The position numbers and the translations under genes are program-made. This document shows, piece after piece, positions 8,201 through 61,087 of a stretch of 64,000 nucleotides of DNA (the first letter of the stretch is position 1; each line of letters starts with the position of its first letter). The DNA lies in assembly GCF_902713615.1 (NCBI RefSeq), contig NC_052158.1, forward strand, positions 17,976,546 through 18,040,545, given 5' to 3'. Under the pieces are notes generated by a model that was not told where the DNA came from, did no database searches, and saw nothing but the letters and a program-made list of their open reading frames with translations. The stretch is from Scyliorhinus canicula. Its lineage: Eukaryota.

Positions 8201-11200
8201 TGTTAATAAAGCCTAAGATGCTGCATTCTTTATTAACCACTCTCTCTCCTTGTCCTGTCACCGCTAATTGTGAAATGATATCCTGTGCATCAAGGTTTAG
8301 GTCATTAATTTACATCAGGAAAGTCAGAACCCTTTGAATACCAATGTATATCTATCTTCAGTCTGAACAAGCAACAACTGTCATTCACCCCGTTTCATAT
8401 CCATGTTGCTACTGTCCTCGTTATTCTGTATATTTTCTATGTTTCTGCCTGTTAGGGTGACTGTTCCCCTGTTGCCAGAGACTAGGGAACATACGAGGAG
8501 GTTAAAGGGCAAAACCGTGTATTGAGATATTGAAGTTATTTCTCTGTCATTTAGATGTAAATTTTCCACTGGGATCACTCCTTCCAGCTCTACAGCCCCC
8601 TTGTCCTGACTGAGATCTCGGAGGGGGGTGTAGGGCTGGAGGAGGAGAGCCCACTCCCTTGTCCTGGCTGAGATCTCGGAGGGGGGTGTAGGGCTGGAGG
8701 AGGAGAGCCCACCCCCTTGTCCTGGCTGAGATCTCGGAGGGGTGCTGTAGGGCTGGAGGAGGAGAGCCCACCCCCTTGTCCTGACTGAGATCTCGGAGAG
8801 GGGTGTAGGGCTGGTGGAAGTTACAGAGATACTGACTGGGGGGAATGCGGTGTATACGTTTAAGTTTGAGATATGTCTGGGTCAGAAGGCGATGGAATGG
8901 AATTCCCAGTGGGAATGTAGCTGTTGTCCGTGTTATCTCATCACTGAGTCAGAAAGCTGTAGATTTCTGTCCCATTCCAGAATATGGAGCAGGAAGTCCA
9001 GACTGACAATCCCAGCGCAGTACTGAGGAAGTGGCAGCACGGTGGCCTAGTGATTCGCACAGTTGCTTCTCAGCTCCATGGTCCCAGGTTCGATTCCCCG
9101 CTGGGTCACTGTCTGTGCCGACTCTGCACGTTCTCCGCGTGTCTGTGTGGGTTTCCTCCGGGTGCTCCGGTTTGCTCCCACAGTCCCAAGATGTGCAGGT
9201 GAGGTGGACTGGCCGTGATAAGTTGCCCTTTAGGCCGGTACAGACTTATTGGGCCGAATGGCCTCATTCTGCACTGTACATTCTATGATCTGTGATCTAT
9301 GAAGTGCTGCAGTGTTGGAGGAGCCTCTTTCAGATGAGACTTTACACCTTCTCAGCTGGAGGGCAATGATCCAGTGGCTGGAGTTTGAAGAGGAGGAGGA
9401 GAGCCCACCCCCTTGTCCTGACTGAGATCTCGGAGCGGTGTGTAGGACTCGAGGGCGAGAGCTCAGCCCCTTGTCCTGACTGAGATCTCGGAGGGGGGTG
9501 CAGGGCTGGAGGAGGAGAACCCACCCCCTTTTCCTGACTGAGATCTCGGAGGGGGTATAGGGCTGGAGGAGGAGAGCTTACCCCCTTGTCCTGACTGAGA
9601 TCTCGGAGGGGGGTTTAGGGCTGGAGGAGGAGAGCCCACCCCCTTATCCTGACTGAGATCTCGGAGGGGGGTAGGGCTGGAGGAGGTGACAGAGATAGGG
9701 GGCGCGATTCTCCGCTCCCCACGCTGGGAGGGAGAATCGCGGGAGGGCCGGGTGACTAATTTCACACCCCCCCGGCGCCCCCCGCAATTCTCCCACCCCC
9801 CCGGCTCGGAAAAAGCGCTGCTCGCCATTTTTCACAGCGACCGGCGACTCTCCGACCCGGATGGGCCGAGCGGCCGGCCGTTCGCGACCGTTTCACGGCG
9901 GCGGTAACCACACCTGGTCACTGCCGTCGTGTAATCGCCTTAAGATGCCCGTTTGGGGCTTGTAGGGGGCCTGGTGGGGACTGAGCACCACAACTGTTCT
10001 CGGGAGGAGACAGGCCCACAATCGGTGCCCACCGATGGTCGGGCTGGCGTCTCAATGGGACGCAATATTTCCCCTCCGCCGCCCCGCAAGATCAAGCCCC
10101 CACGTCTTGCGGGGCGGCTGAGGGGAAGACGGCAACTGCGCATGCGCGTCTGACATCACATAGGCGCCGCCGACGCGTCATTCTCGGCGCGCCGCCTTAA
10201 CGCAAGCTTCAAGGCCCAGCAGTTGAAAATAAAGGAGCGCCGCTCCTAGCCCCCCGGGTGGGGGTGAATACGCGCCCAGGATGTGGGCAGTGAGAATTTT
10301 AAGTTCGAGGCATTGCTGGGTTCAAAGCTGATGAGGATCAGTGAGCACTGGGGGGGCTGAAATTATCAACAGGGGACAACCAGTGTCAGATTCCAGTAGA
10401 TTGAGCTCAGGGCGGTGACTGACTTCCTACAACTTGTCTTAACCAAGGTCCTGTACTGGAGGGAGATCTTTATTCTCAGTAAATTGATGCTGATCTGAGC
10501 TGAGTGAACGGGGCTGAGGGAATGGGGAGAAATTTCTTCAGACACTCTGTCCCTGAGCTTCCACAGTTCCTGGGCTGAGGAAAGTGGTGATGTCCCATCA
10601 CCGTCTGCACATGTCTCGTCATTCACTTCTGTTTTTCTCACAGTAACAGCTTCCCAATCATGTTCTCTTCCAGTTCCAGCATCTCTCACCCTGGACCCAG
10701 AGACAGCACACAACAAACTCATCATTTCCCAGGATCTGACTAGTGTGAGGTACGGAAATGAGGAGCAAGATCTCCCAGAACATCCGGGAAGATTTGATAA
10801 ATATGTGTACGTTTTGAGCTCCCAGAGTTTCACATCAGGGAGACACTACTGGGAGGTGGGTCTTGGAAACAAACCTTACTGGATTGTGGGTGTCTGCAGA
10901 GAGTCTGTCAACAGGAAAGGAAATATCACAGAGTCACCTGAGAATGGATTCTGGGTCATCGCCTGGCTTTCTGGCGGCAAATCATTGAAATTCCTGGATG
11001 TCATCTCGCAGCTAAAAGTGAAACCCCGGAAGTTGGGAATTTACCTGGATTATGAGGGAGGACAGGTATCATTTTACGATGCTGAGGACATGTCTCACCT
11101 GTACACCTTCACTGACACATTCACCGAGAAACTCTACCCCATCTTTAATCCCTGTAATAATAAGTCTGGTAATAACTCTGAGCCACTCACACTGCTCTCT

Positions 11201-11206
11201 GGGTAA
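2272..11206 (+). CDS. TRIM E3 ligase copy 1 (RING-Bbox2-CC-PRY/SPRY, TRIM39/TRIM27/A33-like), intact, about 465 aa
   Basis: Exons 2272-2664, 3300-3395, 4022-4255, 5043-5065, 5150-5268, 10674-11206; all introns GT-AG; 1398 nt in frame. C3HC4 RING, B-box2, LTLDPETA, GRHYWEV and LDYEGG motifs. Confidence 0.92.
3641..3790 (+). repeat. 69-bp minisatellite, about 2 units (copy 1 intron 2)
   Basis: Unit gtctgtaactcactcccaggtatccattattctatatataaaccatctgaacccctcgattagattcca. Confidence 0.85.
5340..6520 (-). mobile_element. Decayed CR1-clade LINE 3' fragment in intron 5 (also about 21960-23740, 38213-39290, 51950-53110)
   Basis: MEYNVGKWEVVHLGRKN...VQRDLG...NGMLAFI is typical CR1 ORF2 C-terminal sequence. 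Confidence 0.8.
6830..7720 (+). mobile_element. Highly decayed CR1-like LINE fragment (present in each unit)
   Basis: CR1-like 3' motifs such as ggctgaggggagatttaattgaggtatataaaatt and aacatttataaag. Confidence 0.55.
7147..7329 (-). mobile_element. tRNA-derived SINE, copy 1-specific insertion
   Basis: Minus-strand A/B boxes (ggtttagctcactgg, ggttcgattcc), tttcta-type tail, TSD agatta at 7141-7146 and 7330-7335. The site is empty in copies 2-4. Confidence 0.85.
8596..8830 (+). repeat. 58-bp GC-rich minisatellite, about 4 units
   Basis: Unit ccccttgtcctgactgagatctcggaggggggtgtagggctggaggaggagagccca. Confidence 0.9.
9033..9300 (+). mobile_element. V-SINE/HE1-like SINE (paralogous copy at 41650-41915)
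   Basis: tRNA-like head ggcagcacggtggc...ggttcgattcc plus V domain gtgggtttcctccgggtgctccggttt. Confidence 0.85.
9391..9690 (+). repeat. 58-bp minisatellite, about 5 units
   Basis: Same unit as the array at 8596. Confidence 0.9.
9700..10277. mobile_element. Non-autonomous Harbinger-type MITE (right TIR partly deleted)
   Basis: Left TIR gggcgcgattctccgctccc, 3-bp TSD agg, homologous to 42259-42878. Confidence 0.75.
10674..11206 (+). CDS. TRIM copy 1 terminal exon, PRY/SPRY (B30.2) domain
   Basis: Acceptor ttccag at 10668-10673; VPASLTLDPETA...GRHYWEV...LDYEGG...EKLYP; stop ends at 11206; AATAAA at 11504-11509. Confidence 0.93.
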
Positions 11207-11924
11207 CGCAGTGGGACACGTTTTGGGAGGTCGGAGTTTTAGTGAGAAGCCTGATTCCCTGTCTGAACAGCTCATGTTGTCCTGATTCTCTGCTGTGTAC
11301 TGTCAGGGGGTGAGTGTGTTTCTGTATTGTTTATTCTGTAAATTTAACTCAGATTCTCCACCCATCCCACTGTCCCGATCTCAATATAATGGGACCCATA
11401 AACACTGGACTGGTATAGAATGAAGCAAAATCTCCTGAATTGTGGTAACTGTGCCCAGCTCTCGAACAATTCGCTCTGAATCTTTATTTTGTTTCCTCCC
11501 TTGAATAAATATTTTATTTGAAGACGGGACTGACACCTGGTGTGATGATTATTGATTCAGTGAATGAGCAGAAAGAATGTTTTTTCACTCCTGTATGGGA
11601 TGTGGGTGTCACTGGCTGAGCCCTCGTTACCCATCCGTAATTGCCTTTGAGAAAGTGGTGTAGGTACACCCACTGTGCTGTTAGGGAGGGAGTTCCAGGA
11701 TTTGGACCCAGCGACAGTGAAGGAACGGCCGATGTGTTTCCAAGTCAGGATGGTGAGTGACTGGAAGGGAACCTCCAGGTGGTGGTATCAGGAATGAGAA
11801 TATCAGAATAGGTTCCGGAGTAGGACCTGTGACCATTCGGGAAGATCCTGTCTGAACATCAACATCGACTCCACTTTCCCATCCTATCCCTTCATTCCCT
11901 TTGTACTCAGGAATATATAGATCT

Positions 11925-16714: not shown

Positions 16715-17142
16715 AAGTCTGTGCTGACATGTGGAGGAAAGACCTGCCCGACCTACTTAATCCCATTTGCCAGTACTTGACCCATAGCAATGAATATTAT
16801 GACGTGCCAAGGGCTCACCCAGCTGCTTCTTACACGACGTGAGGCAACCCTCCTCTACCACCCTCCCTGGCAGTGCATTCCAGACCGTCACCACCCTCTG
16901 GGTACTCACATCTCCTCTAAACCTCCTGCCGCTCACCTTCAACTTGTGTCCCCTCGTGTCTGACCCTTAAACTGAGGTGACCAGCTGTTCCCTACCCACC
17001 CTGCCCATGCCCCTCATAATCAGTCAGAGCTGACAGCAAATGACAATTATACAGCACCTTTAATGTAGTTAGCATACGACAGGCATCTCAATGTTAGTGA
17101 CAGAGAAATTCCAGATGTGGAGATGGACTGGGGTGGGCACAG

Positions 17143-17405
17143 TGATGCACAATCAATGGACACGAAACGTCGATAAAGTCCGAACGATAGGCTTTAATAC
17201 ACAAGAAGTGGACCCGGTAGCAGACGTACAGAAGAGTGGCAGACTGCTGGGGTACACGGATTCTTATACCCCGCATCGTAGGCGGAGCTACCTACCTCTC
17301 AGCTGAGAGGCACATGACATACCTGGGCCAATGGGCAGCGAGTCCTCTGCACCAATGGCAGCTCACACTTCCAGGTACCGTAATACCCCTAGTCATACTA
17401 CCAAA
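17143..17405 (-). mobile_element. Short solo LTR (Gypsy-like)
   Basis: Ends TGATGCA...TACTACCAAA (near TG..CA); near-TSD cacag/gacag; minus-strand TATAAG and ATTAAA. Interrupts a gggcacag^taagaa repeat. Confidence 0.55.
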
Positions 17406-18311
17406 GACAGTAAGAATCTCACAACACCAGGTTAATGTCGAACAGGTTTGTTTCAAATTACAAGCTTTCAGAGTGCTGATCCAGTTCATTTTGATTAAAT
17501 CTGTTGGTCTTTAACCTGGTGTTTAAAGAAATTCAAGAGCTCCCTATTGTCCCCTAGCAACATTTCCTCCCCTGTCAGCAGAGCAGCTCCCCCCACCCCT
17601 CCCCCCATTAGCAGCACCACAATCACAATCCCCCCATACCAAGCTTATCACCTGCTCACCTCCCACTGCGCTTCCGTAAACCAGCTCACCTAGCTAGCCT
17701 GGTAGCTCCCGCCCATGGCGCCAGACACCCTATCTCCCTATTGTTCTCCCTCCCATCCCCCCCCCAACTCGGACATACATATTCAGAGCATCACAGTCCC
17801 CAGTAAACAAATAGCAAACAGTAGAAAAATCCTTCCATCCATCACCCACCAGTATAGTTACATAACTTTTCTGAGCAACTGCTCAAACATCTTAACAAAA
17901 TGAAAATCAAAGAAAAAGGGAGGGCCAAAAAAAAATAGAAAAATAAACAAGCACTCCATATCCAAGACCTCACATGGACTTTAACCTGGTGTTTATAGAA
18001 ATTCAAGAACTCCTCCCTTCTTTGTGTTGAGGGAGTGGGGGGGGGGGGGGGGAGAGATTTGCAGGGGAGATAAGGGTATTTATGACTGGTGTGGTTCACA
18101 GAGAACAGGAATTAATGTTATAAATCTGACTTTATAAAAATGAAAAAGGCTCCAGACACAATAAAGGGGTCAGTTTGATTTAGTTACAAAGTTGCTGACA
18201 CTGAGTGTGTCACTGATCACGTGAAGTGAAATCCAGGAAGTGCAGAGCTGAACAGGAATTGACAGTGAAAGAGCTGGAACAGGGAAGGAGAGAGAGACTC
18301 TGGGCACTGAG

Positions 18312-26240: not shown

Positions 26241-27494
26241 GAGATACTGGCTGGGGGGGGGGGGAATGCCGTGTAGACATTTACGTTTGAGATATGTCTG
26301 GGTCAGAAGGCGATGACGGTCAGTGAGAATGGGGTCTTGGGAACGGGGAAGGTTAGGAGGATCATGGGGGGGGGGGGGGGGATGTGGTTGGTGATGGGTG
26401 TATGGGTCTTGGTGGAAGTTATGACTGTGGGCAGCAGAATTTGGATGATCTCACGCTTCCGTTTCGGGTTCCACGTTGAAAATAAATGAACGCACATCCA
26501 GACTCCCCCTTGACTGTTGTGCACAAAGCAGTGAGACAGTTAATGTTTCAATCCCATTCACAAATTGAAAAACGTGTCAACACTGTCCAAAAAATGTCAC
26601 AACAGGCTGGACACAGGGCGGTGACCGAGTTCCTACAATTTGGCTTCACCGAGGTCCTGTACTGGAGAGAGATCTTTATTCTCAGTGAATTGATGCTGAT
26701 CTGTGCTGGGTGAATGGAGCTGAGGGAATGGGGAGGAATTTCTTCAGACACTCTGTCCCTGAGCTTCCACAGTTCCTGGGCTGAGGGAAGGGGTGATGTC
26801 CCATCACCGTCTGTACACGTCTCGTCATTCACTCCTGTTTTTCTCACAGTAACAGCTTCCCAATCATGTTCCCATCCTATCCCTTCATTCCCTTTGTACT
26901 CAGGAATATATCGCTCTCTGTGTTGAATATACTCACTGACATCTCATCGAGAGAGAGGATTCCAAAGATTCACAACTCTCTCTGAGGGAAGGAATTTTTC
27001 CTCATCTCAGTCTTAAATGGACGACCCCTTATCCTGATTCTGTGACCCCCTCGTTCTAGACCAGTCTCAGCATCTACCCTGTCAGGGTCTCTGAGAATTG
27101 TATTTGTTTCAATAGGATCATCTCTTATTCTTCTGAACTTCAAAGAATATAGAGCCATCCAACTCAATCCTTCCTCATTTCGGAAAACCCTTTCATTGCA
27201 AGAATCAATTCCGTGAACCTTCATTGCTCCCTCTAAGGTAAGTATATGTTTCCTCAGGTAAGGAGACTGAAACTGTCCACAGTCCTCCAGCTGTGTCCAC
27301 ACTCAATCCCTGTTACATTGCAGCGAGACTTATTCTCTTATACTTCAACCCCATTGTAATAAAGGCTAAGATACCATTAACCTCCCTAATTGTTCACTGT
27401 ATCTGCTTGTTAACTTTCTCTGCTTCATGGATACACAAATCCCTCTGATTCCCAACATTTACAAGTCTCTCATCTTTTAAAAATATCCTGAGAT

Positions 27495-30861: not shown

Positions 30862-31238
30862 CTTTGTTTCACAGAATCAGACAGTGCAGAACAGGCCATT
30901 CAGCCCATCAAGTCTGTGCTGACATGTGGAGAAAAGCCCTGCCCGACCGACCTAATCCCATTACCAGTACGTGACCCATAGCAATGAATATTATGACGTG
31001 CCAAGGGCTCACCCAGCTGCTTCTTACAGGATGTGAGGCAACCCGCCTCTACCACCCTCCCTGGCAGTGCATTCCAGACCGTCACCACCCTCTGGGTACT
31101 CACATCTCCTCTAAACCTCCTGCCCCTCACCTTCAACTTGTGTTCCCTCGTGTCTGACCGTTAAACTGAGGGACCAGCTGTTCCCTACCCACCCTGCCCA
31201 TGCCCCTCATAATCAGTCAGAGCTGACAGCAAATGACA

Positions 31239-31670
31239 TTTATTTTGTTTTAAACATTTTATTAGGGTATTTATAGTTTTTATTATAATAACAATAACAA
31301 CAACATGAACAGAGTATATTAGACATTTCCATCCTTGACACCTCCGGACGAACCCGAACATTGACCCTCTTAGGGCGAACTTTATTTTCTCCAGACTGAG
31401 AAACCCAGCCATGTCGCTAACCCAGGTCTCTGCACTCGGAGGCTTCCAGTCCCTCCACATCAACTGTATCCGTCTCCAAGCTACCAGGGAGGCAAAGGCT
31501 AAAATGTCAGCCTCTCTCGCACCTGGACTCCCGGCTCTCCAACACTCCAAAGATCGCCATCTCTGGACTCGGCACCACCATTGTTTTAAGTACCGTGGAC
31601 ATGACATCAGCGAAACCTTGGCAAAAGCTTCTAAGCTTCAGGCATGCCCAAAACATGTGGACATGATTTG

Positions 31671-31705
<35 letters not shown>

Positions 31706-34514
31706 CTCGCCTCACAACCTGTCCTCTATCCCAAAAAACCTGTTCATCTGGGCCACTCTCCTGTGTGCCCGTTGGACTACCTTAAATTGTATCAGGCTGA
31801 GTCTGGCACATGATCAGGATGTTAACCCGACCTAAGGCATCCGCCCACAGCCCCGCCTCTATCTCTCCCCCTAGCTCATCTTCCCACCTGCCCTTTAGCT
31901 CCTCTATCTGAATTTCCTCCAACTCCATAAGCTCTTTGTAAATATCCGATACCTTCCCCTCTCCCTCCCCCATTCTGGAAACTACCCTGTCCTATATCCC
32001 ACGTGGTGCAGGAGCGGGAAGGTCGGAACCTGCCTTCTCAAAAAATCCCATACCTGCAGATACCTAAAACCATTCCCTGCTGGCAGTTCAAATTTCTCCT
32101 CCAAATCCTTCAAACAGGGGAAGCTCCCATCTATAAATAAATCTCCCATCCTCTCAATCCCTGCTCTCTGCCATTTCCCGAAACCTTCCATCTAGCCTTC
32201 CCGGTACAAACCGATGGTTATTGTAAATCGGGGCCCAGACCGATGCTCCCTCCGCTCTCCTATATTTCCTTCACTGCTCCCAGACTCTCAGGGCCGCCAC
32301 CACCACCGGGCTTGTGGAGTACCGGGGCCGGTGAGAACGGCAGAGGTGCTGTAATCAGTGCCCCCAGATTTGTGTCCTTGCATGATGCCGCCTCTACACT
32401 CACTCCCACACCGAACCCCTACCCCAGTACCCACTTCCTAATCATGGCTATATTTGCCACCCAGTAGTAGTTACAGACGTTCGGCCGTGCCAACCTACCC
32501 TCCACCCGACTACACTCCAGCAACACTTTCTTCACTCGTGGGGGTTTACCCGCCCACACAAAGCCCGAAATCACCCTATTTATAAAGCTGGGGAGACACT
32601 GAAAAACAAACAGAAATCTGGGGAGGACCGTCATTTTTACGGTCTGTCCCCTCCCCGCCAGTGACAGCGGGAGCATGTCCCATCTCCCAAAGTCCTCCTT
32701 CATCTGCTCCACAAACCGGGACAAGTTTAACTTGTGCAGTGTCTCCCATTCCCGAGCCACCTGGATTCCCAGATAGCGAAAGCTCCTTCCCACCATTCTA
32801 AACGGCAGCTCTCGCAGTCTCCTCTCCTGCCCCCGCGACTGAATCGCGAACATCTCACTTTTCCCCATATTCAATTTCTACCCCGAAAACCGACGTAAAT
32901 CCCCGAGGATCCGCATAATCTCCCCCATCCCCCCTAACGGGTCAGAAATATACAGGAGCAGGTCGTCCACATAAAGCGAGATTCAGTGTTCCCCCCAACA
33001 CAGACCAGCCCATTCCAGTTCCTAGAAGCTCTTAACGCCTTTGCCAATGGCTCTATGGCCAGAGGGAGAGGTCACACCCTTGCCTTGTCCCCCGGTGCAG
33101 CTTAAAATAGCCCGACATCAGCCGATTCGTTCGCACGCTTACTACTGGTGCCTGATACAGCAACCGCACCCAATCAATGAAGCCCTGTCCAAACCCAAAC
33201 CTTCCTAACACCTTCCACTCCACCCGGTCAAAGGCCATCTCCACGTCCATTGCAACCACCATCTCCATTTCGCCCCCCCCCCCCCCCCCCCCCCCACTCT
33301 GAGGGCATCATGATAACGTTTAGGAGCCTTCCAACATTGGCCCAGAGTTGCCTGCCCTTCACAAACCCCATCTCTTCTTCCCCGATCAGCTCCGGAACAC
33401 AGTCCTCTATCCTTGTGGCCAAAATTGTAGCCAGCAGTTTGGCGTCCACATTCAATAGGGAGATTGGCCTGTATGACCTGCAGAGCTCAGGGTCCTTCTC
33501 CCACTTTAGAATCAATGAGATCGAGGCCGGTGACATTGTTGGGGAAAGGGCACCTCGCTCCCTTGCCTCATTAAATGTCCTCACCAGCAGCAGGCCCAAC
33601 ATCTCCGAGAACTTCTTTTAAAATTTCAGTGGGTAGCCATCCAGGCCCGGGGCCTCACCCGACTGCATGCCCTCCAGCCCGTCCATTATTTCCTCAATTT
33701 CAATTGGGGCCCCCAACCCTTCCACCAATCCTTCCACCATCTTCAGGAACTTTAACTGACCCAGGTACTGCCTCATCCCCTCCAACCCAGCCGGGGGTTC
33801 CGACTCACATAACTTGCTATAAAACTCCTTAAACACCTCACTCACCCCCACTGGGTCCAGAACCCCATTCCCACCTCTGTCCATTACTCTCCCTATCTCC
33901 CTGGCCTCCTCCCTTTTCCTCAGCTGCCGTGCTAGCATCCTCCTGGCCTTCTCCCCATAATCACATACCGCCCCCCTCGCCTCCTGCTATTGCTGCAATG
34001 CCTTCCCTGTAGATAACAGGCCAAACTCCATCTGTAGCCTCTGCCGCTCCCTCAGTAACCCCACCTCTGGAACCCCCGAATATCTCTTATCCACCTGGAG
34101 TATTTCCCCAACCAACCTATCCCTCTGTGCTCGTTCCGCCTTTTCTCATTGGGCTGATATCGAGATTAGCTCCCCCCTAACCACTGCCTTCAGAGCTTCG
34201 CACTCCGTTGCTGCCGAGACGTCCCCCCGTGTCATTTATTTCCAAATAGTTCTGGATAGACTTGCTCACCCGCCCACACACCCCCTCATCTGCTAATAGT
34301 CCCACATACAACCTCCATAACGGGCGCTGCCCTCTCTCTTTACTCACCCGTAAATCCACCCAAAGTGAGGCATGGTCCGACACAGCGATCGGCAAATACT
34401 CGGTATCAACCACCCCCGCCAGTAACGCCGTGCTCAGGTAGTCGATCCGAGAATATACTTTGTGGACATGGGAGAAAAAAGAAAACTCCTTCACTCTTGG
34501 CCGTCCAAACCTCC
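31239..34514 (-). mobile_element. 5'-truncated L1-clade LINE (decayed ORF2: EN C-terminus, RT, C-terminal region, A-rich tail)
   Basis: FSFFSHVHKVYSRIDY and SDH (APE endonuclease); YRPISLLNVDAK, AFDRVEW, RGTRQGC, LYVDDLLL, FRYLGI (RT). AATAAA and A-rich 3' end near 31239-31295. Absent at the paralogous site near 17045. Confidence 0.92.
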
Positions 34515-34547
34515 GTGTGACGGACAAATGATTGTCCATCATTTGTG

Positions 34548-35413
34548 GACACTGGGGGCAGGAAACATCTCCCGGGACCTTCTGCCAACTCTGGGAGATG
34601 CAGGAGCTGCAGAAATGATGTCCACATTCCAGAGACACCGGATTGGGTGAATATCTCCAGACAGATGGGACAGGTTAGTTCCTGTGTGAGATCTGGAGAT
34701 GCCATCTCAGTGCCCAGAGTCTCTCTCTCCTTCCCTGTTCCAGCTCTTTCACTTTCAATTCCTGTTCAGTTCTGCACTTCCTGGATTTCACTTCACGTGA
34801 TCAGTGACACACTCAGTGTCAGCAACTTTGGAATTAAATCAAACTGACCCCGTTATTGTGTCTGGAGCCTTTTTTACTTTTATAAATTCAGCTTTCTCAC
34901 ATTATTTCTCTTCTCTCTCTACAAACCTACCCCTTGAAAACTCTCTCTCCCCTTTCCCCACCTCCCTCAACTCCCCCGTGTGAGGAACTCAGCAATGGCT
35001 TTCTTAGTTACAATCCAGACCATCCTTACAGCTGTTTCTGTTACTAACCTCCTGCCCCCCAACCCACTGACCAAACATCCCCCCTTCACCCCCACATCTT
35101 TCTCTAGTTTCTCTCCTCACCCTCCCCCCAAGTCCTTTCCAAATCTATCTCATCCCTGAGCCCCTCCTTATCCTCTCTCCACCCTGTCACCATCTGACCC
35201 TCATTCTGACAAAAAACATCTTTTTGAACATGTCCACCCCCATTTCCAACCTCCCCCTTCTCCAAATTCCTGGAGAGTCTCCCTCTCTCCCTCCCAAATC
35301 CGGGCCCATCTTTTCCCCCCTCAATCCTGCCGGAACCTCTCTGATCAGCTTCTGGACAGGAAGATGGAAAGTTGCTGCAGAGTTTAGGTAACACACACAC
35401 ACAGACACCCAGA
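34548..35413 (-). pseudogene. Inverted promoter and RING half of TRIM copy 3 exon 1
   Basis: Minus-strand ATG at 34705, [20 protein letters not shown], +1 frameshift near 34642, RING continues to CPQC at 34548. The upstream region matches that of copy 5. Confidence 0.9.
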
Positions 35414-36334
35414 GGAACGTCAGGCCCGCTCGGACCCTGAGTAACGTCGTGGAGAAGTTCAGAGAGGTGAAGGTGACACAGCCACAGGAGGAGTTTTACT
35501 GTCAGGATCACGAGGAGAAGCTGAAACTCTTCTGTGAAGATGAACACAAAGCGATCTGTGTGGTGTGTGGGATGTCCAGAGCTCATAAGACGCACAGTGT
35601 GATCCCAATAAAGGAGGCAGCCCAGATATACAAGGTACTGGATCACTGCTCCTGGCACAGGTAGATGGGGAAGAGGGGCAGGGTGTAAGTCACAGAGAGA
35701 GAGAGTGTTTGTAGAATGTGGGGAGGGGAAGAGAGGGCAGGAGAGACCGGGATAGGGAAGGGGAGAGGGATGTTGAAAGAGGAGAGGGTTGGAGCGAGTA
35801 GAGGATTGATTGAGGAGGGGAATTAACCTTGAGGAGGATAACTGCAATAAACAGAATTAACCCACAGCTTCTACTTTGTTTATTGAGTGTAATCAATCCT
35901 GAGAATATCTCCTTCTCTACCTCACTGGCCTCACTCTATTTAAACCCTCCAGAAGGTGACAATGATTGTTTCCTTTGACAAACCCATTTGTGTCCTTTCT
36001 GTCTCAGAACAAGTTAGAAACATCATTGGAAACTCTGCAGAAGCAAATGGACCTCAGTCTTCACAGTAAAAGAGAACGAGAGGATGGGATTTTCCACATG
36101 AAGGTAGGAGAGTGTCCTTTAGGCTTTGTGTAAACTTCCCTGTGTTTGTTATTGAGAGTGAGTGAGCTTCTCACACAGTCAGAGAGAGAGTTTTACTGAA
36201 TAAAATGCTGCTGCTCCAAAGTACATTGCGGGCTGCTCCCTGAACTGCAATATAAATTTCAGATTATGATAACAATGTGAAAGTGTCTTAATTTCTCTCT
36301 CAAGCCAATCCCATCGATTGATGTAATAAATCAT

Positions 36335-36670
36335 GTCTTTAACTCATTCCCGGGGATCTATTATTCTATATATAAACCATCTGAGCCCCTCGATTAGAGT
36401 CCAGTCTGTAACTCACTCCCAGGTATCCATTATTCTATATATAAACCATCTGAACCCCTCGATTCGATTCCAGTCTGTAACTCACTCCCAGGTATCCATT
36501 ATTCTATATATAAACCATCTGAACCCTTCGATTAGAGTCCAGTCTGTAACTCACTCCCAGGTATCCATTATTCTATATATAAACCATCTGAACCCCTCGA
36601 TTATATTCCAGTCTGTAACTCACTCCCAGGTATCCATTCTGAATTCCACAATTAGATTCCACTCAGTCAC
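36335..36670 (+). repeat. 69-bp minisatellite, about 4-5 units (copy 3 intron 2)
   Basis: Same 69-bp unit. Confidence 0.9.
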
Positions 36671-39600
36671 TCAGCCCTTGATGTCTATTATTTCATAATT
36701 AACTACTGGAATCACTTTATAATGTTTGTTTGCAACTCACTCCCACATACCCAATATTTCATCAAACTGTTCAGCCGGCAGTGAGCTGTTATTATTAGTT
36801 ATTCTTATTGGATATAAATTTTTATCCTATATCCCAGTGGAGAGAGACCAGGGACACTGGGATAATAAACATTGTTTATTCCGTTCTGTCTTCAATCTGC
36901 TCCAGGCTGAAGTTGACAGACTGAGAAATGAAATCAACAGTGAATTTGAAAAGATGCACAAGTTCCTGTTTGAGAAGGAGGAGCTGATGAAAGCAGAGTT
37001 GGAGAGAAAAAGCAATAAAATATTCGAGGAAATGGAGAAGAATTTAACCAAAACCATGGATGAAATGTCTTCTCTTGAAGGAGCAATAAGAGATCTTAAA
37101 TCGAGGCTGGAGGTACAACTGGCCCCAGAGTTCCTCAAGGTACAAAATCTTTGTCTTGTCCAGTGAAACATTCCAGAGACTGAGGGTGGGCACTCTGACC
37201 TTTAACCTCTGGGTTTGGTTTAGGCCTCAATCTGATTGGTTGGATGATTGTCTCTTTGTGCTGTCAGTAAGGGTCCAATGGGAAATGAGGTGAGATAATC
37301 TCAGTGTGATTCCTATACACAGCGTAACCACGGCACTGATTGATGATTGGACTCCGAGAGAGCTGGGCTGGGAACTGGAGATGTTTACACTGCTGCAGAT
37401 GGAGTTCTACTGAGATCTGCTGAGGACGGGTTAAAGTGCATTATTGCAGGGGAGATGGAGCTATGGTTAGAGAGATAACTGAGGGTAGAACGCCCAGCTG
37501 GACAACAGTGGAGGGGCGATGGAGGAGGATGGCGTGATCGACCGTGTCAAAGGCTGCAGACTGATCGAGAATAATGAGGAGGGAAAGTTTGTAAGGATGG
37601 GTTTTTTGGGGAGAGGGGTGAAGATGTAGATTTAAATGAGAGAGAGGGACAACAGCTGAAGAGATGAAACAGTTTCCAATCCCAGCTAACATGGGGACCA
37701 GGAGGGGAGGTTGGGAGATGAGTAGTTTTTGGGAATAGGATGGAGGGGACAGGAAGTGGGTCTCATGGACAAGATGAGCCCCGAGAGGGAATGAAAGGAA
37801 AAAGTAAAAGTTATTTTCTAACTGAAATCTTGGTCTCTCAATTTGTACTCGAGATTTACAACAAGAACTCTTTAATCTGACTCGATCATATCTATTCTGT
37901 TTCTTTCCCATCAGGATATTCAAGAGCTGTTGATGAGGTAAACAGATAAAAAGAAACAGTTTTGTGATGTGATCACTGCTGTCTCTCTAACACACACTGA
38001 TTTCCAGACCTGTTTTTACAGGAGTCAGATGGAGTTTCACAAGCCTGGAACTGTCTCCACTCAGTTACCTGTGGCTATCGCTGGTGAACCAGTCAAATAC
38101 ATCAAAGTGTGGAGGGAAATGAGAGCAGTGATTTCACCAGGTATCATTCTCTGTATATTACTGTCTCCCTGCTGTTATCCACGTGATTAATGAGGTTTGA
38201 CACACTGATGAAATGATCAGAAGATCAGAAGGAATAAGAACAGGAGTGGTCCAGCCCAGTGAACCTGCTCTGAGTTTTGATCAGATCATGTCTGATCTGA
38301 TTGGGGCCTTTACTCCACTTTCCTGCCTGTCGCAGATGACCCTTAACCCCCCTGTTAATCAACAATCTATGGAACTTGGTCTGTCTTCAATAGAGGCCCC
38401 TTCATGTAATGCTGTGTCACCTACACCTCGATTGGCCCGGAGATCAAACATCCTCCCAGCATCTACCCTGGTGAAGGAATCCCCTCAGAATGTCATGTTT
38501 CAATAAGATAACCTCTTATTCTTCTAAACTCCAGTGAGTATAGACCCAACAAGCTCACCTTTCCTCATCCCAGGAATCAGCCAGTGAACCTTCTCTGAAC
38601 TCTGTCCAATGAGAGTCTCTCCCTCCTGATGTAAGGAGATCAGATCTGAACACAGTACTCAAGCTGCAGTCTCACCAATCCCCTGTAAAGTTGGAGCAAG
38701 TCTTCCCCACTTTACACTCCTTCCCTTTTCCAATAAAGGCCAACATTCCATTTCTTTCCCACATTCCTTGCTGCACCTGGACACTAGCTTTTAGTGATTG
38801 ATGTACAAGGTCCCCCAGATCCCTCTGTACTGCAGCATTCTGCTGTCTCTTTCTATTGAAATAATTTGCTGCTTTTCTATTCTTCCTGCCAAGGTGGGCG
38901 AACCTCCCATTTTCCCACATTATACTCCATCTGGTAAATCTTTGTCCACTCACTTAACCGGTCTATATCCCGCAGACACTTTGTATCCTCCTCACAACTT
39001 CCCAACCTCACTTTGTGGCATCAGAAAATTTGGCTCCAGCATATTCGATTTCTTCATCCAATCAGGAATATTGATCATAAATAGTTGTATCCCCATCACT
39101 GATCAATAATCTTGGGGATTTGCAAAGATTACAACCAATGCATCCACTTTCTCTCCAGCCCCTCCTTTAAAATCCTGGGATTACGGACATCAGGTCCAGG
39201 GGACAAGTTGCCTTTAATCCCGTTAGTTTTGCAGATATTTTTTCTCTGGTGATCATGATTGTTCAAAATGTATCCCTCCCTTTTCCCTCCTGCTTTTCCC
39301 CAACACTGGATGACCCCAGGTGTTGTTCTCTGTATATTGTTGGGTATTTTTCTTTCCCCAGGTTATAAGAAAACATTTGTTTAACGATATTTTGACATTT
39401 CTGAGGGACATTGCCAGACCTCAGCACAGAGCACCGATTGGTCCCCACATGCCCCGTTGCTAAGACTGATACACTTCCCCTCACTCCGTACACCAGTCAC
39501 CATGACTACACTCTGTCCCCTTCTGTGGCCAAGAACAGGAACGCCCAACTTAGGCAGACATCACCTTCTGTCTCTCCCTCAGCACTTTGCCTTGCTGTGA

Positions 39601-41215
39601 ATGGAATTCAGTTCAGAGAAGTGTGAGGTTAATGTATTGGGAGAGGGAAGATATGACAAGGGAATAGCCAATAAGTGGTAAGATAGTGAGAGGTGTGGGG
39701 GAATAGAGGGAGATTTGAGTTTATGTCCACAGATTCAGGACAGGTGGATAAAGTGGTGACGCTAACACACCGGATATTTTCCTGTACTGACCACGGAATA
39801 GAAAATAAGCGCTGCGAGGTAATGTCGGAACTTTAGAAAACACGTTAGTCCACAGCTAGAGTACTTTATATCTTTCTGGTCAGTGTGTTGGAGAAGTTAC
39901 CGAGGAGATTAATGAGGGTGTTGGATGGTTCAGAGAACTTGAGTTCTGCGTTATGATTGGATAGATTGGGCTTGTTTTCATTGGATCAGAGGAGGCTGAG
40001 GGGAGATTTAATTGAGGTGTATAAAATTAGGAATGTCCAGATAGAGTGGAAAGGAAATCCCGAGTCCCATTGCCTCGGGGTCCCTGATCAGGGAGAATAG
40101 ATACAGGGTAAGAGGGAGGAGGGTTAAAGGGATTATTTTCACACACAATGTGGCCTGGATCTAGGACTCACAGACTGAAAGGTTGAGAGAGGCAGAAACC
40201 CTCATAACATTTATAAAGTAATCAGATCTACAGTGAAAGTGCCGTAACCAAAAGAGTTACGGAGCAGAAACTGGAAACCGGGATTGGGCTGGAGAATTCT
40301 ATTTCAGCCGAATCTCACAGGTTGGTCTGAAATTGCCTCTTTCTGTGAATCCCAGAATATTTACAAAACGAGAAGTGACCATTCGGCCCATTGTATTCCT
40401 GCTAGCTCACCAACTTACCCAGGGCCATTCCTTCACCTTTTTCTCTGTCGCTCTGCAGATTTAAGTTCTTCAGTTAATGATTCAATTCCATATGAAAGCT
40501 GTGATTGAATCTGATTCCACCACAGTGCATTCCTGATCCTAAACACTCGCTGTGTGAAAAGGTTTTCCCTCACGATAATGTGGCTTCTTTTGTCAGTCAG
40601 TTTAAATTATGTGTCCTCTGGTTCTCTTCTCTCAGGGGAACTACCTCAGCTTCTCCAATCTGTGTCCGTAACTGAATTTCCTCCTCCCAGGAATCATTGT
40701 GGTGAATGTTTCCTGCTCTCTCTCTCTAATGCCCTCACATCCTCCCTCAAAGTGTGTTCCCAGAACAGAGTTGAGGGTTAACCAGTGTTTATACAGATAT
40801 AACTTTGTCACTCTATTCTGTGTTAATAAAGCCTAAGATGCTGCATTCTTTATTGACCACTCTCTCTCCTTGTCCTGTCACCCCTAATTGTGAAATGATA
40901 TCCTGTGCATCAAGGTTTAGGTTGTTAATTTACATCAGGAAAGTCAGAAACTTTTGAACACCAATGTGTATCTCTCTTCAGTCTGAACAAGCAACAACTG
41001 TCATTCACCCCGTTTCATATCCATGTTGCTACTGTCCTCGTTATTCTGTATATTTTCTATGTTTCTGCCTGTTAGGGTGACTGTTCCCCTGTTGCCAGAG
41101 ACTAGGGAACATACGAGGAGGTTAAAGAGCAAAACCGTGTATTGAGATATTGAAGTTATTTCTCTGTCATTTAGATGTCAATTTTCCACCAGGGTCACTC
41201 CTTCCAGCTCTACAG

Positions 41216-42245
41216 CCCCCTTGTCCTGACTGAGATCTCGGAGGGGGTGTAGGGCTGGAGGAGGAGAGCCCACCCCCTTGTCCTGGCTGAGATCTCGGAG
41301 GGGGTTGTAGGGCTGGAGGAGGAGAGCCCACCCCCTTGTCCTGACTGAGATCTCGGAGGGGGATGTAGGGTTGGAGGAGGAGAGCCCACCCCCTTGTCCT
41401 GGCTGAGATCTCAGAGGGGGGTGTAGGGCTGGAGGAAGTTACAGAGATACTGGCTGGGAGGATGCCGTGTAGACATTTAAGTTTGAGATATGTCTGGGTC
41501 AGAAGGCGATGGAATGGAATTCCCAGTGGGAATGTAGCTGTTGTCCGTGTTATCTCATCACTGAGTCAGAAAGCTGTAGATTTTTGTCCCATTCCAGAAT
41601 CTGGAGCAGGAAGTCCAGACTGACAATCCCAGCGCAGTACTGAGGAAGTGGCAGCACGGTGGCCTAGTGGTTCACACAGTTGCTTCACAGCTCCAGGGTC
41701 CCAGGTTCGATTCCCGGCTGGGTCACTGTCTGTGCGGAGTCTGCACGTTCTCCCCGTGTCTGCATGGGTTTCCTCCGGGTGCTCCGGTTTCCTCCCACAG
41801 TCCAAAGATGTGCAGGTTAGGTGGATTGGCCGTGATAAATTGCCCTTTAGGCCGGTACAGACTCACTGGGCCGAATGGCCTCATTCTGCACTGTACATTC
41901 TATGATCTGTGATCTATGAAGTGCTGCAGTGTTGGAGGAGCCTCTTTCCGATGAGACTTTCCACCTTTTCAGCTGGAGGGCAATGATCCAGTGGCTGGAG
42001 TTTGAAGAGGAGGAGGAGAGCCCACCCCCTTATCCTGACTGAGATCTCGGAGGGGGGTGTAGGGCTGGAGGAGGAGAACCCACCCCCTTTTCCTGACTGA
42101 GATCTCGGAGGGGGTATAGGGCTGGAGGAGGAGAGCTTACCCCCTTGTCCTGACTGAGATCTCGGAGGGGGGTTTAGGGCTGGAGGAGGAGAGCCCACCC
42201 CCTTATCCTGACTGAGATCTCGGAGGGGGGTAGGGCTGGAGGAGG
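41216..42245 (+). repeat. Two 58-bp minisatellite arrays (41216-41440, 42010-42245) flanking a V-SINE
   Basis: Same layout as in copy 1. Confidence 0.85.
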
Positions 42246-42258
42246 TGACAGAGATAGG

Positions 42259-42878
42259 GGGCGCGATTCTCCGCTCCCCACGCCGGGAAGGAGAATCGCG
42301 GGAGGGCTGGGCGACTAATTTCACGCCCCCCTTGGCGCTCCCCGCGATTCTCCCACCCCCTCGCTCGGAAAAATCGGCGCTCGCTGTTTTTCACAGCGAC
42401 CGGCGATTCTTCGACCCGGATGGGCCGAGCGCCCGGCCGTTCGCGACCGTTTCACGACGGCAGAAACTACACCTGGTCGCTGCCGTCGTGAAATCGCCGT
42501 AAGATGCCCGTTTGGGGCTTGTAGGGGGCCTGGTGGGGACTGAGCACCACGACTGTTCTCGGGAGGGGACAGGCCCGCAATCGGTGCCCACCGATGGTCG
42601 GGCTGGCGTCTCAACGGGACGCAATTTTTCCCCTCCGCCGCCCCGTTAGATCAAGCCGCCATGTCTTGCGGGACGGCTGAGGGGAAGACGGCAACCGTGC
42701 ATGCGCGGGTCGGAGCCGCAAGTATCAAGGCCCGGCGGCCGAGAATAAAGGAGCGCCGCTCCTAGCCCCCCGGGTGGGGGTGAATACGGTGAGAGGAGCG
42801 GCCTCCGAGGCCGTTGTGAAACTCGGCCGAGTTCACGACGGCCTTCAAGATTTTTCCCGGGAGCGGAGAATCTCGCCC
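42259..42878. mobile_element. Harbinger-type MITE with both TIRs
   Basis: TIRs gggcgcgattctccgctccc and gggagcggagaatctcgccc (19/20 match); TSD agg at 42256-42258 and 42879-42881. Confidence 0.85.
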
Positions 42879-43274
42879 AGGGTGTGGGCAGTGAGAATTT
42901 TAAGATCGAGGCATTGCTGAGTTCAAAGCTGATGAGCATCAGTGAGCACTGGGGGGGCTGAAATTATCAACAGGGGACAACCAGTGTCAGATTCCAGTAG
43001 ATTGAGTTCAGGGCGGTGACCGACTTCCTACAACTTGTCTTAACCGAGGTCCTGTACTGGAGAGAGATCTTTATTCTCAGTGAATTGATGCTGATCTGTG
43101 CTGGGTGAACGGAGCTGAGGGAATGGGGAGGAATTTCTTCAGACACTCTGTCCCTGAGCTTCCACAGTTCCTGGGCTGAGGAAAGTGGTGATGTCCCATC
43201 ACCGCCTGTACACGTCTCGTCATTCACTCCTGTTTTTCTCTCAGTAACAGCTTCCCAATCATGTTCTCTTCCAG

Positions 43275-43810
43275 TTCCAGCATCTCTCACCCTGGACCCA
43301 GAGACAGCACACAACCAACTCATCATTTCCCAGGATCTGACTATTGTGAGGTTTGTGGACAGGGTCCTTATTGCCCTTCCCAATAATCCAGAGAGATTTG
43401 ATAATTACTTGTATGTTTTGAGCTCCCAGAGTTTCACATCAGGGAGACACTACTGGGAGGTGGGTCTTGGAAACAAACCTCTCTGGATTGTGGGTGTCTG
43501 CAGAGAGTCTGTCAACAGGAAAGCGGGGATCACACATTCACCTGAGAATGGATTCTGGGTCATCGCCCGGCTTCCTGACTGCAAATCATTGAAAATCCCG
43601 GATGTCATCTCCCAGCTGAAAGTGAAACCCCGGAAGTTGGGAATTTACCTGGATTATGAGGGAGGACAGGTATCATTTTACGATGCTGAGGACATGTCTC
43701 ACCTGTACACCTTCACTGACACATTCACTGAGAAACTCTATCCCATCTTTAATCCCTGTAATAATAACTCTGGTAATAACCCTGAGCCACTCACACTGCT
43801 CTCTGGGTAA
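43275..43810 (+). CDS. TRIM copy 3 terminal exon, intact PRY/SPRY domain
   Basis: Open frame VPASLTLDPETA...EPLTLLSG*, 536 nt. Confidence 0.75.
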
Positions 43811-44544: not shown

Positions 44545-45120
44545 ACGGACGTCTCACTGAGGTGGAGCTCAGCTTCAGGGCCATGGTAACGGTGGCAATA
44601 CCGTTGTCACCGAGGGGATATACGGAGAGCCCGGGTGTACAGTCCACGGTTAGGGTGTGGAACCAGCTGAGGAGACACTTTAGGATGGAGGGGATGTCGG
44701 TGCTAATACTGTTGTGTGTGAACCACGGATTCAAACCGGGGGAGACGGATGGCATGTACAGGAGGTGGAGAGAGGTGGGGTTGATGAGGGCGAGGGAATT
44801 ATATTTGAAGGCGAGGTTCGCCAGTCTGGAAGAGCTGTGGGAGAGGGTAGAGTTCCCGAGGGGGGAGTGATTTTAGGTATTTCCAAGTGAGGGGCTTTGC
44901 ACGGAAGGTGTGGAAAGAGTTCCCCAGGCTGCCGAAGTCGCCCTATTGGAACGGCTGCTGCTTCCGGACATGGAGGAGGAGGGTAGGATTGGGGACATAT
45001 TGGGGGAGCAGGGAGAATGCACATGGTAAGGATTAAGGAGAAATGGGAGGAGGAGTTGGGGGTAGATAGGGGAGTTGGGAATGAGGCGCTGGGTGGGGTG
45101 CATTTGACCTCTTGTGCGCG
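44545..45120 (+). mobile_element. L1-clade ORF2 C-terminal fragment
   Basis: SPGVQSTVRVWNQLRRHF...; homologous to 58440-59010. Confidence 0.7.
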
Positions 45121-46829: not shown

Positions 46830-46960
46830 GGTGCGTGTGTGTGTCAGGGTCTGTGTTTGTGTGTGTGTGCGTGAGGGTGTGTGTGTGTCAGGGTCTGTGT
46901 TTGCATGTGTGAGGGTGTGTGTGTGTCAGGGTCTTGGTCTGTGTGTGTGTGTCTGTGAGG
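46830..46960 (+). repeat. Compound (GT)n microsatellite
   Basis: gtgtgt runs interspersed with cagggtct. Confidence 0.85.
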
Positions 46961-47904
46961 GTCTCTGACTGGGACTGGAGACCCCCCTGAGGACAGTTTC
47001 CAGCACAAACACTTTGATTCAGTCAGAGGCAACAACAAGTTACATTTATATAGCACCTTCAATGCAGGAAAACAGCCAAAGGGACTCGACAGCAGCGTCA
47101 ATCAGACAACAATATTTGAGACTGAATCTGTTCTTCGAGACGCTTCTCCCCAAAGGCAGAGAATGTGCAGCATCTGAGAAATGAGCAGCTCCAACACACC
47201 ATTGTTCCTGTTCACTCCAGTTACAGAAACTCTGCACCAACTTTCCATCTTCCTGTCCAGAAGCTGATCAGAGAGCTTCCGGCAGGATTGCGGGGGAAAA
47301 GATGGGACCGGATTTGGGAGGGAGAGAGACTCTCCAGGAATTTGGAGAACAAGGGGGAGGTAGGAGATGGGGGTGGACATTTTCAAAAAGATGTTTTTTG
47401 TGAGAATGAGGGTCAGATGGTGACAGGGTGGAGAGAGGATAAGGAGGGGCTCAGGGATCAAATGGATTTGGAAAGGAATTGGGGGGAGGGTGAGGAGAGA
47501 AAGTAGAGAAAGATGTGGGGGTGAAGGGGGGATGTTTGGTCAGTGGGTTGGGGGGCAGGAGGTTAGTAACAGAAACAGCTGTAAGGATGGTCTGGATTGT
47601 AACTAAGAAAGCCATTGCTGAGTTCCTCACACGGGGGAGTTGAGGGAGGTGGGGAAAGGGGAGAGAGAGTTTTCAAGGGGTGGGTTTGTAGAGAGAGAAG
47701 AGAAATACTGTTATAAATCTGACTTTATAAAAGTGAGAAAGGCTCCAGACACAATAAAGGGGTCAGTTTGATTTAATTCCAAAGTTCCTGACACTGAGCG
47801 TGTCACTGATCACGTGAAGTGAAATCCAGGAAGTGCAGAGCTGAACAGGAATTGACAGTGAAAGAGCGGGAACAGGGAAGGAGAGAGAGACTCTGGGCAC
47901 TGAG

Positions 47905-56763: not shown

Positions 56764-57989
56764 CGCAGTGGGACACGTTTTGGGAGGTCGGAGTTTTAGT
56801 AAGAAGCCTGATTCACTGTCTGAACAGCTCATGTTGTCCTGATTCTCTGCTGTGTGCTGTCAGGGGGTGAGTGTGTTTCTGTATTGTTTATTCTGTAAAT
56901 TTAACTCAGATTCTCCACCCATCCCACTGTCCCGATCTCAATCTAATGGGACCCATAAACACTGGGCTGGTATAGAATGAAGCAAAATCTCCTGAATTGA
57001 TGTAACTGTGCCCAGCTCTCGAACAATTCATTGTGAATCTTTATTTTGTTTCCTCCCTTGAATAAATATTTTATTTGAAGACGGGACTGACACCTGATGT
57101 GATGATTATTGATTCAGTGAATGAGCAGAAAGAATATTTTTCCACTCCTGTATGGGATGTGGGTGTCGCTGGCTGAGTCCTCTTTGCCCATCCCTAATTG
57201 GCCTTGAGAAGGTGGTGTAGGTACACCCACAGTGCTGTTAGGGAGGGTGTTCCAGGATTTGGACCCAGCGACAGTGAAGGAACGGCCGATATGTTTCCAA
57301 GTCAGGATGGTGAGTGACTGGAAGGGAACCTCCAGGGGGTGGTATCAGGAAAGAGAATATCAGAATAGGTTCCGGAGTACGACATGTGACCATTCGGGAA
57401 GATCCTGTCTGAACATCAACACCGACTCCACTTTCCCATCCTATCCCTTCATTCCCTTTGTACTCAGGAATATATCGATCTCTGTGTTGAATATACTCAC
57501 TGACATCTCGCCGAGAGAGAGAATTCCAAAGATTCCAAACTCTCTCTGCGGAAGGAATTTCTCCTCATCTCAGTCTTAAATGGACGACCCCTTATCCTGA
57601 TTCTGTGACCCCTCGTTCTAGACCAATCTCAGCATCTACCCTGTCAGGATCTCTTAGAATTGTATATGTTTCAATAAGATCATCTCTCATTCTTCTAAAC
57701 TTCAAAGAATATAGAGCCATCCAACTCAATCCCTCCTCATATCGGAAACCCTTTCATCCCAAGAATCAATTCCGTGAACCTTCATTGCTCCCTCTAAGGT
57801 AAGTATATGTTTCCTCAGGTAAGGAGACTGAAACTGTCCACAGCCCTCCAGCTGTGTCCACACTCAATCCCTGTTACATTGCAGCAAGACTTATTCTCTG
57901 ATACTCCAACCCCATTGTAATAAAGGCTAAGATACCATTTCCCTCCCTGATTGTTCACTGTATCTGCTTGTTACCTTTCTCTGCTTCAG

Positions 57990-60761: not shown

Positions 60762-61087
60762 TAGAACAGTACAGCACAGAACAGGCCCTTCGGCCCTCGA
60801 TGTTGTGCCGAGCAATGATCACCCTACTTAAACCCACGTAACCCGTATACCCGTAACCCAACAATCCCCCCATGAACCTTACACTACGGGCAATTTAGCA
60901 TGGCCAATCCACCTAACCCGCACATCTTTGGACTGTGGGAGGAAACCGGAGCACCCGGAGGAAACCCACGCACACACAGGGAGAACGTGCAGACTCCACA
61001 CAGACAGTGACCCAGCCGGGAATAGAACCTGGGACCCTGGAGCTGTGAAGCATTGATGCTAACCACCATGCTACCGTGAGGCCCCAA
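60762..61087 (-). mobile_element. V-SINE/HE1-like SINE, copy 5-specific insertion upstream of the gene
   Basis: Reverse complement of the 16375 family. Interrupts gaagctgatcagagagg, with a possible atca TSD. Confidence 0.88.

Follow-up and report, generated by a model that had tools for sequence, protein, structure and literature searches.

The fusion of a TRIM gene to foreign coding sequence through L1 activity is known from primates, where L1-mediated retrotransposition of CypA gave rise to the TRIM5-CypA fusions (TRIMCyp) of owl monkeys and macaques. Rearrangements at L1 insertion sites were reportedly studied in cell culture by Gilbert et al. in 2002 and by Symer et al. in 2002, and twin priming, which leads to inversion of the L1 5′ part, is said to have been described by Ostertag and Kazazian in 2001. 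Microhomology-mediated template switching or end joining, with templated insertions, characterizes both fork stalling and template switching/microhomology-mediated break-induced replication (FoSTeS/MMBIR) and polymerase-theta-type repair. Here, we describe a locus in a 64,000-nt stretch of DNA from the catshark Scyliorhinus canicula (the window) in which the promoter and RING-coding sequence of the third of five tandem TRIM gene copies is inverted beside a 5′-truncated L1. We consider it probable from the sequence that a single deletion and inversion coupled to L1 integration turned copy 3 into a pseudogene. Events of this type are already on record for human L1, where complementary DNA (cDNA) ends join distal breaks and the junctions carry inversions, deletions, and templated or untemplated insertions or microhomology (PMC11702581; PMC13526784; 10.1101/179705).

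The catshark locus shares with the human insertion-site rearrangements a 5′-truncated cDNA made by target-primed reverse transcription and joined to a DNA end that is not its own reciprocal one, a target deletion with inversion, and short microhomology or inserted nucleotides at the junctions (PMC11702581; PMC13526784; PMC7058536 / 10.1101/179705). The human cases are somatic or experimental, whereas the catshark case comes from a germline assembly, has 0.87 kb inverted inside one gene of an immune array, and is read as a single event from its structure. Twin priming likewise involves an L1-linked inversion and the reciprocal target end (see also PMC2837659), but there the L1 itself is internally inverted and flanked by a target-site duplication (TSD), whereas the catshark L1 is colinear from residue ~190 and it is host DNA that is inverted. 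The 8-bp microhomology, the patchwork, snap-back-like hairpin filler and the deletion-inversion-deletion pattern are shared with FoSTeS/MMBIR and polymerase-theta-type repair; the locus differs in that one junction is an L1 cDNA end and no duplicate of the inverted segment is present. With TRIMCyp it has in common a TRIM gene, the L1 machinery and foreign coding sequence placed after that for the TRIM N terminus. In TRIMCyp, however, a cellular cDNA was inserted downstream and spliced in frame, so that a working domain replaces the SPRY domain, whereas copy 3 has had its own 5′ end flipped onto a dead L1 fragment, with no ATG-initiated frame, no gain of a functional domain and no expression seen.

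Organization of the array and the inverted segment of copy 3

Self-blastn of the window delineates five tandem units of ~14.5 kb, each containing one class IV TRIM gene. Exon 1 of copy 4 matches Pfam zf-C3HC4_4 and zf-B_box, and the last exons of copies 3 and 4 match PRY and SPRY. The predicted order of RING, B-box2 and PRY/SPRY is that of class IV TRIM genes, an assignment that rests on these three elements as scored in exon 1 and the last exon. Exon 2 (36008 in copy 3) is found in all five copies. The rearrangement is located at the boundary between units 2 and 3 and involves the following features.

30910–31243, no strand assigned: target flank of the L1 at the end of the copy 2 unit, 95.5% identical to 16715–17050 at the end of unit 1
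31244–34517, minus strand: 5′-truncated L1 of 3274 bp, from tblastn with full-length L1 ORF2 relatives and matches to PDB and Pfam RVT_1
34518–34543 (or to 34547), no strand assigned: filler TGACGGACAAATGATTGTCCATCATT(TGTG) of 26–30 nt, separating the L1 5′ end from the inverted exon
34548–35413, minus strand: inverted copy 3 segment with promoter, 5′ untranslated region (UTR), ATG and RING codons 1–52, from self-blastn and Pfam RING matches
34705–34703, minus strand: ATG, within the inverted segment
34756–34746, minus strand: interferon-stimulated response element (ISRE)-like motif GAAAGTGAAAG, within the inverted segment
34884–34879, minus strand: TATA-like box, within the inverted segment
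35406–35413, no strand assigned: inverted microhomology cacccaga of 8 bp at the right junction
35414–35634, plus strand: rest of copy 3 exon 1 (linker and B-box2), frame open, with a donor at 35635
43245–43810, plus strand: PRY/SPRY exon of copy 3, frame open

The inversion is confirmed in copy 3 as assembled. Approximately 700 bp of promoter together with the 5′ UTR, the ATG and the whole RING are reversed relative to the four paralogous copies, at ~95% identity. In self-blastn, positions 34544–35392 match the opposite strand of copy 1 (2432–1578, 94.3%), copy 2 (18472–18100, 95.2%), copy 4 (48065–47220, 95.2%) and copy 5 (61885–61088, 95.0%), and positions 35406–35700 match the same strand of copy 2 (99.0%), copy 4 (97.6%) and copy 5 (96.9%). 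An earlier reading made from the letters alone (the sequence-only reading) had proposed that about 860 bp of copy 3 promoter and RING are inverted, and the opposite-strand homology to four copies bears this out. Followed in its sense direction, the segment starts at a (GT)n tract ~700 bp upstream ((CA)n on the forward strand) and ends right after the final CPQC zinc pair; the 52 RING codons hold all eight zinc ligands. Copy 3 as assembled is split head to head, with the predicted promoter, ATG and RING facing the L1 and the B-box-to-SPRY exons left promoterless. Within the promoter, four substitutions private to copy 3 fall in 12 bp (34887–34898) and abolish a TATA-like box, the more distal one of a pair, which reads TTATAAATCTGACTTTATAAAA in the paralogues.

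Downstream of the inversion, open frames persist in the B-box portion of exon 1, in exon 2 and in the PRY/SPRY exon, and the open PRY/SPRY frame indicates that the downstream part has not decayed. Four runs were placed on positions 33900–35900 at 98% likeness, namely two DNA runs and an RNA-like run as contigs and a raw RNA run, and the copy 3 donor position agrees with that of a spliced RNA-like contig of the paralogues. Private substitutions are found at 9 of 783 sites (1.1%) in the inverted part of copy 3 and at ~1% of sites in the direct part (our tally of listed sites). This equality suggests a single event and was counted in its favour.

The L1 element and its target

By homology, the element is an L1-clade long interspersed nuclear element (LINE) whose ORF2 resembles an APE-type endonuclease and a reverse transcriptase. 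Its minus-strand pieces, from 34512 down to 31347, are colinear in tblastn with residues ~190–1253 of L1 ORF2 relatives of 1140–1269 amino acids (aa), reaching close to the C-terminus, with at least four frame changes near 34225, 33290, 33060 and 32327. The significant PDB matches (E below 1e-13) are to human L1 ORF2p only, with one marginal match to another chain (E = 0.003). Twin priming was considered and ruled out, all ORF2 pieces being colinear and on the minus strand. Contigs of other L1 copies diverge from the window at 34514 and 34517, and these loose ends together with the protein alignments place the 5′ truncation at 34517, which corresponds to R182 of human ORF2p. The protein relatives carry a conserved D-P-W-R-F motif, of which R-R-F is what remains in the L1 at the unit 2/3 boundary; the endonuclease domain retains approximately its last 57 of ~240 residues. 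At the 3′ end, an AATAAA (31263–31258) is followed by ...AAAACAAA at 31244, a short A-rich tail, and the target, ATTTAT/A, is a loose match to TTTT/AA.

The last bases of the target flank, ACATTTAT (31236–31243), are the start of a repeat resembling a short interspersed nuclear element (SINE). This repeat runs on at 17043 (the copy 1/2 junction), 1410 and 47043, whereas at 31243 it breaks off and never resumes. The rest of it is absent, as is all DNA up to the site that reads TCTGGGTG in copy 5; by analogy with copies 4 and 5, the intergenic DNA lost would amount to at least ~100 bp. Because the filler and antisense exon 1 follow position 34517 and the SINE-like repeat is not resumed after 31243, the L1 5′ end appears to be joined to DNA other than the far side of its own target, with deletion and inversion of host DNA, as in L1-coupled target rearrangements. 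The L1 is present only at the unit 2/3 boundary and therefore arrived after the unit duplications. A separate, plus-strand L1 ORF2 fragment is common to copies 4 and 3 (57968–58897 and 44565–44999) and is partly deleted in copy 3; since it is shared, it is older than the duplication of units 3 and 4.

The right junction and the exon breakpoints

The right junction is defined by an exact overlap of two homologies. In copy 5, TCTGGGTG lies upstream of the promoter at 60690–60697, exactly where homology to the inverted piece of copy 3 ends, and in exon 1 of every copy the reverse complement, CACCCAGA, lies exactly at the start of the direct homology. In copy 3 the inverted and direct homologies overlap by exactly these 8 bp, an overlap that at an alignment-fixed junction would arise by chance at ~4 to the power −8 by our own arithmetic. 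Copy 5 serves as the proxy for the ancestral upstream state because the GT-rich sequence of copy 4 at this site, though related, is imperfect and is accompanied by a 354-bp insertion. Relative to the other copies, the exon has lost GGTCTT, or GACAGGTCTT if the mismatched tgtg at 34544–34547 is counted as filler, and the two inversion breakpoints were thus only 6–10 bp apart in the original exon. The sequence-only reading had placed an 8-bp inverted microhomology at 35406–35413 and near 60690, as found here, and had put the exon loss at about 10 bp, which holds as a range of 6–10 bp depending on how the filler is counted.

Three sites common to copies 2 and 3 only lie at 35439–35446, 33–40 bp to the right of the exon breakpoint, and may represent a short conversion patch. 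They were considered as a conversion tract that would mark a double-strand break at the exon breakpoint, but three clustered sites are too few. Upstream, copies 4 and 1 share a ~350-bp insertion between the GT-rich site and the promoter (46866–47220 and 1369–1578) that takes in the beginning of the SINE-like repeat. Neither copy 3 nor copy 5 has this insertion; copy 5 carries instead a 320-bp SINE-like insert at 60757–61078.

The filler at the left junction

The L1 5′ end lies 26–30 nt from the inversion breakpoint. The intervening filler contains a 9-bp hairpin (acaaatgat at 34524–34532 and atcatttgt at 34538–34546) of a kind seen in 0.04% of random 30-mers from the window (P = 0.0004). A second candidate hairpin, tccgt/acgga, was rejected as evidence: it is 5 bp long, lies half within the L1 and is within chance by our estimate. 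The sequence-only reading had described a filler of about 33 bp made of hairpins; its contact with the 5′-truncated L1 is real and the 9-bp pair stands, but L1 homology reaching 34517 shortens the filler to 26–30 nt and the 5-bp pair falls away.

The first part of the filler (34518–34531, TGACGGACAAATGA) resembles the target flank at 31224–31236 (TGACAGCAAATGA), matching 14 nt to 13 nt with one mismatch and a 1-nt gap (P about 0.01–0.02). The next bases of the target, CA, are unmatched. This stretch sits where a TSD is expected, and the target sequence does not continue after it; a degenerate TSD at the start of the filler is possible. The earlier statement that no TSD is visible is therefore doubtful in view of this imperfect 14-nt resemblance. 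In addition, filler positions 34526–34543 resemble exon sequence 34612–34628 with two gaps (P = 0.03), and the target flank resembles the same exon stretch (P = 0.06). The three resemblances share AAATGA and are not independent, and at P = 0.01–0.06 they offer weak leads for a template-switch path only. The hairpin of the filler and its weak resemblance to both flanks are as in templated insertions.

A probable single event coupled to L1 integration

The steps proposed here are drawn entirely from the anatomy of the sequence. The L1 would have been reverse-transcribed from a nick at ATTTAT/A (31243/31244) in the intergenic SINE-like repeat downstream of copy 2, and its cDNA would have halted within the endonuclease-coding region at 34517. 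Rather than rejoining the far side of its own target, the cDNA end would have been attached through a short patchwork of nucleotides to antisense exon 1 of copy 3. The DNA reaching from exon 1 to a site ~0.87 kb upstream would have been retained and inverted, with its far end sealed to the rest of exon 1 by the 8-bp inverted microhomology. All intergenic DNA that separated the L1 target from the upstream site would have been lost, along with 6–10 bp of the exon.

Two routes can be envisaged. In one, a fragment bounded by the L1 nick and by a second break, in exon 1, would be freed and flipped; its exon end would be joined to the cDNA with inserted nucleotides, and its other end, once resected as far as the 8-bp microhomology, would be attached to what remained of exon 1. 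In the other, the reciprocal end would be resected and its minus-strand tail would snap back, the upstream CACCCAGA pairing with the TCTGGGTG that the same strand carries at exon 1. This tail would then be extended and the loop opened beside the exon breakpoint, or the nascent strand would switch template twice. This second route would require the L1-induced break alone. The sequence is compatible either with template switching or with end joining of two or three breaks, so that of the earlier proposal of an L1 integration resolved by template switching the L1-coupled event is retained as the best fit, and template switching stands level with end joining.

A single event is favoured because the L1 5′ end lies within ~30 nt of a breakpoint whose partner was 6–10 bp away in the original exon. 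Independent events would need a coincidence of ~1% by our rough estimate (10–30 bp within 1–2 kb), and it is this closeness of the breakpoints that would carry the claim of one event. Also counted for it were the sharp limits of the inverted and direct homologies, the 8-bp microhomology, the hairpin filler, and the AATAAA and A-rich tail at the L1 3′ end, which abuts a T-rich site where the SINE-like repeat is interrupted.

Reading frames across the junction

Copy 3 has ATT at 34642–34644 where the four other copies have GT, which amounts to one additional nucleotide and one substitution. From the ATG, translation would go out of frame beyond codon 20 and terminate after 99 codons. A second open reading frame (ORF) crosses the junction.

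34638–34177, minus strand: RING-to-L1 ORF containing the second half of the RING, the filler and L1 endonuclease sequence (SRIDY...SDH)

This ORF has no ATG (the ORF tool assigns a GTG start), runs 114 codons into L1 ORF2 sequence and meets a stop at 34177; of the endonuclease domain it encodes only the final quarter. The in-frame join is a 1-in-3 coincidence, and nothing in the sequence suggests a working fusion. A TRIMCyp-like fusion gene is recognized by an ATG-initiated frame, a complete foreign domain and expression; in copy 3 the ATG frame is shifted, only about a quarter of the endonuclease domain is present and no RNA was seen across the junction among the contigs listed.

The sequence-only reading had the RING continuing in frame into the endonuclease, one +1 indel away from the ATG. 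The frame and the indel are both there, but the frame lacks an ATG of its own, and the interpretation as a failed fusion of the TRIMCyp type is not upheld for an ORF of this kind, with ~57 endonuclease residues, the stop at 34177 and at least four frame changes in the L1. The flipped ISRE-like motif is predicted to point into the L1, which lies in sense orientation to it. This part of the earlier description holds, whereas its extension, antisense towards copy 2, would probably be prevented by the L1 AATAAA, at which such RNA would end short of copy 2.

Public runs and alternative explanations

Several results weigh against a single L1-coupled event at a real junction. The contigs of three runs, among those listed, give no junction support and carry paralogue alleles at all reported differences; four sampled words from the left junction (34492–34578) are in no run listed; exact look-up of three junction-spanning ORFs found none on record; and a homology search with the 153-aa RING-L1 ORF gave no match. 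The exon breakpoint lacks an L1 endonuclease-type motif. No other unit preserves the ancestral copy 2/copy 3 state, so that the deletion and its size are reconstructed by comparison, and a genuine TSD-like start to the filler would fit a normally completed L1 insertion, and hence a history in two steps or a variant of template switching.

Each of the three contig runs contains a contig in which 34544 and 35406 are joined on opposite strands with 6 nt between them, which is the uninverted exon 1 of a paralogue. Contig depth is 30–50 over TRIM sequence and 500–1400 over the L1, which suggests that these sets consist largely of multi-copy sequence; little can therefore be read into their silence on copy 3, the +1 indel included. 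No minus-strand RNA contig crossing 34517/34548 was seen among the contigs listed. The raw RNA run has 0 reads on 33900–35900 and is no test of transcription. The RNA-like run (X6) shows only the normal mRNA of the paralogues, with the donor at 35634 spliced to exon 2 (36008). This run behaves as RNA: a 568-nt contig at a depth of 640 has its 5′ end near the equivalent of 34753, by the ISRE-like motif.

A less likely alternative is that two independent events were involved, an ordinary L1 insertion with a TSD and a later inversion and deletion at the L1 5′ junction, or the same in reverse order. The resemblance of the first 14 nt of the filler to the 13-nt target flank (P about 0.01–0.02) is what a degenerate TSD would give, and a later break could have been favoured by a regenerated endonuclease site or by a fragile hairpin junction, the 9-bp palindrome being a potential fragile site. 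The TSD-like match is imperfect and marginally significant, however, the breakpoint would have to lie only a few bp from the edge of the TSD, and private divergence is the same in the inverted (9/783) and direct (~1%) parts. We regard as quite improbable an assembly artefact in which the 0.87-kb segment was misoriented or copy 3 is a chimera of paralogous copies. A tandem array of ~95% identity is hard to assemble, neither junction is supported by an independent run or gene call, and the +1 indel and other copy-3-private alleles are absent from the contigs listed; but the placed runs are mostly repeated sequence, and this silence carries little weight. Moreover, an assembler would not create a 26–30-nt hairpin filler, an 8-bp microhomology and a 6–10-bp loss, all signatures of repair. 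The segment is inverted without duplication, unlike fold-back read artefacts, is much shorter than a long read, and lies in a window with no N gaps.

The remaining alternatives give the inverted promoter a role. On one very improbable account, interferon would activate the flipped ISRE-like promoter to produce a polyadenylated RNA of TRIM 5′ UTR and RING followed by 3.3 kb of sense L1 ORF2, and read-through from copy 2 would rescue the B-box-to-SPRY half of copy 3. If true, the chimeric RNA could be regulatory or could generate small RNAs acting on the array or the L1 family. That copy 3 is, or once was, a functional chimera, its interferon-responsive promoter driving a RING-L1 fusion protein or a regulatory chimeric RNA, is scarcely credible. 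The 114-codon run of the RING frame into L1 ORF2, the retained ISRE-like motif and TATA-like box, and the correctly oriented L1 AATAAA are what such a chimera would have, but the frame shift after codon 20, the loss of approximately three quarters of the endonuclease domain, and the stop at 34177 with at least four L1 frame changes speak against it. Nor does any RNA contig listed cross 34517/34548, and the homology search found no similar protein.

Neighbouring copies

Copy 2 (26614–26877) lacks a PRY/SPRY exon, there being no counterpart in it of copy 1 10671–11876. The defects of copies 2 and 3 are complementary: copy 3 (35414–43810) lacks a forward promoter and RING and has open B-box, exon 2 and PRY/SPRY sequences, and a read-through hybrid transcript of the two is conceivable. 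At the copy 1/2 junction (17047–18100), the distal 0.48 kb of the copy 2 promoter is replaced by ~1 kb of unrelated sequence containing 39-bp direct repeats (17505–17543 and 17975–18013) and a G16 run.

Implications for TRIM arrays

From its structure, copy 3 is most likely a pseudogene or gene remnant rather than a new fusion gene, and for annotation purposes it would be treated as a split pseudogene, with no fusion gene at this locus. The cited L1 papers characterize the underlying process in human cancers and in L1 over-expression models. If the junctions hold, the catshark locus would provide a base-pair-resolved germline case, from a cartilaginous fish, of an L1 integration intermediate recombining with nearby DNA, and would illustrate one route by which fast-evolving TRIM arrays lose members.

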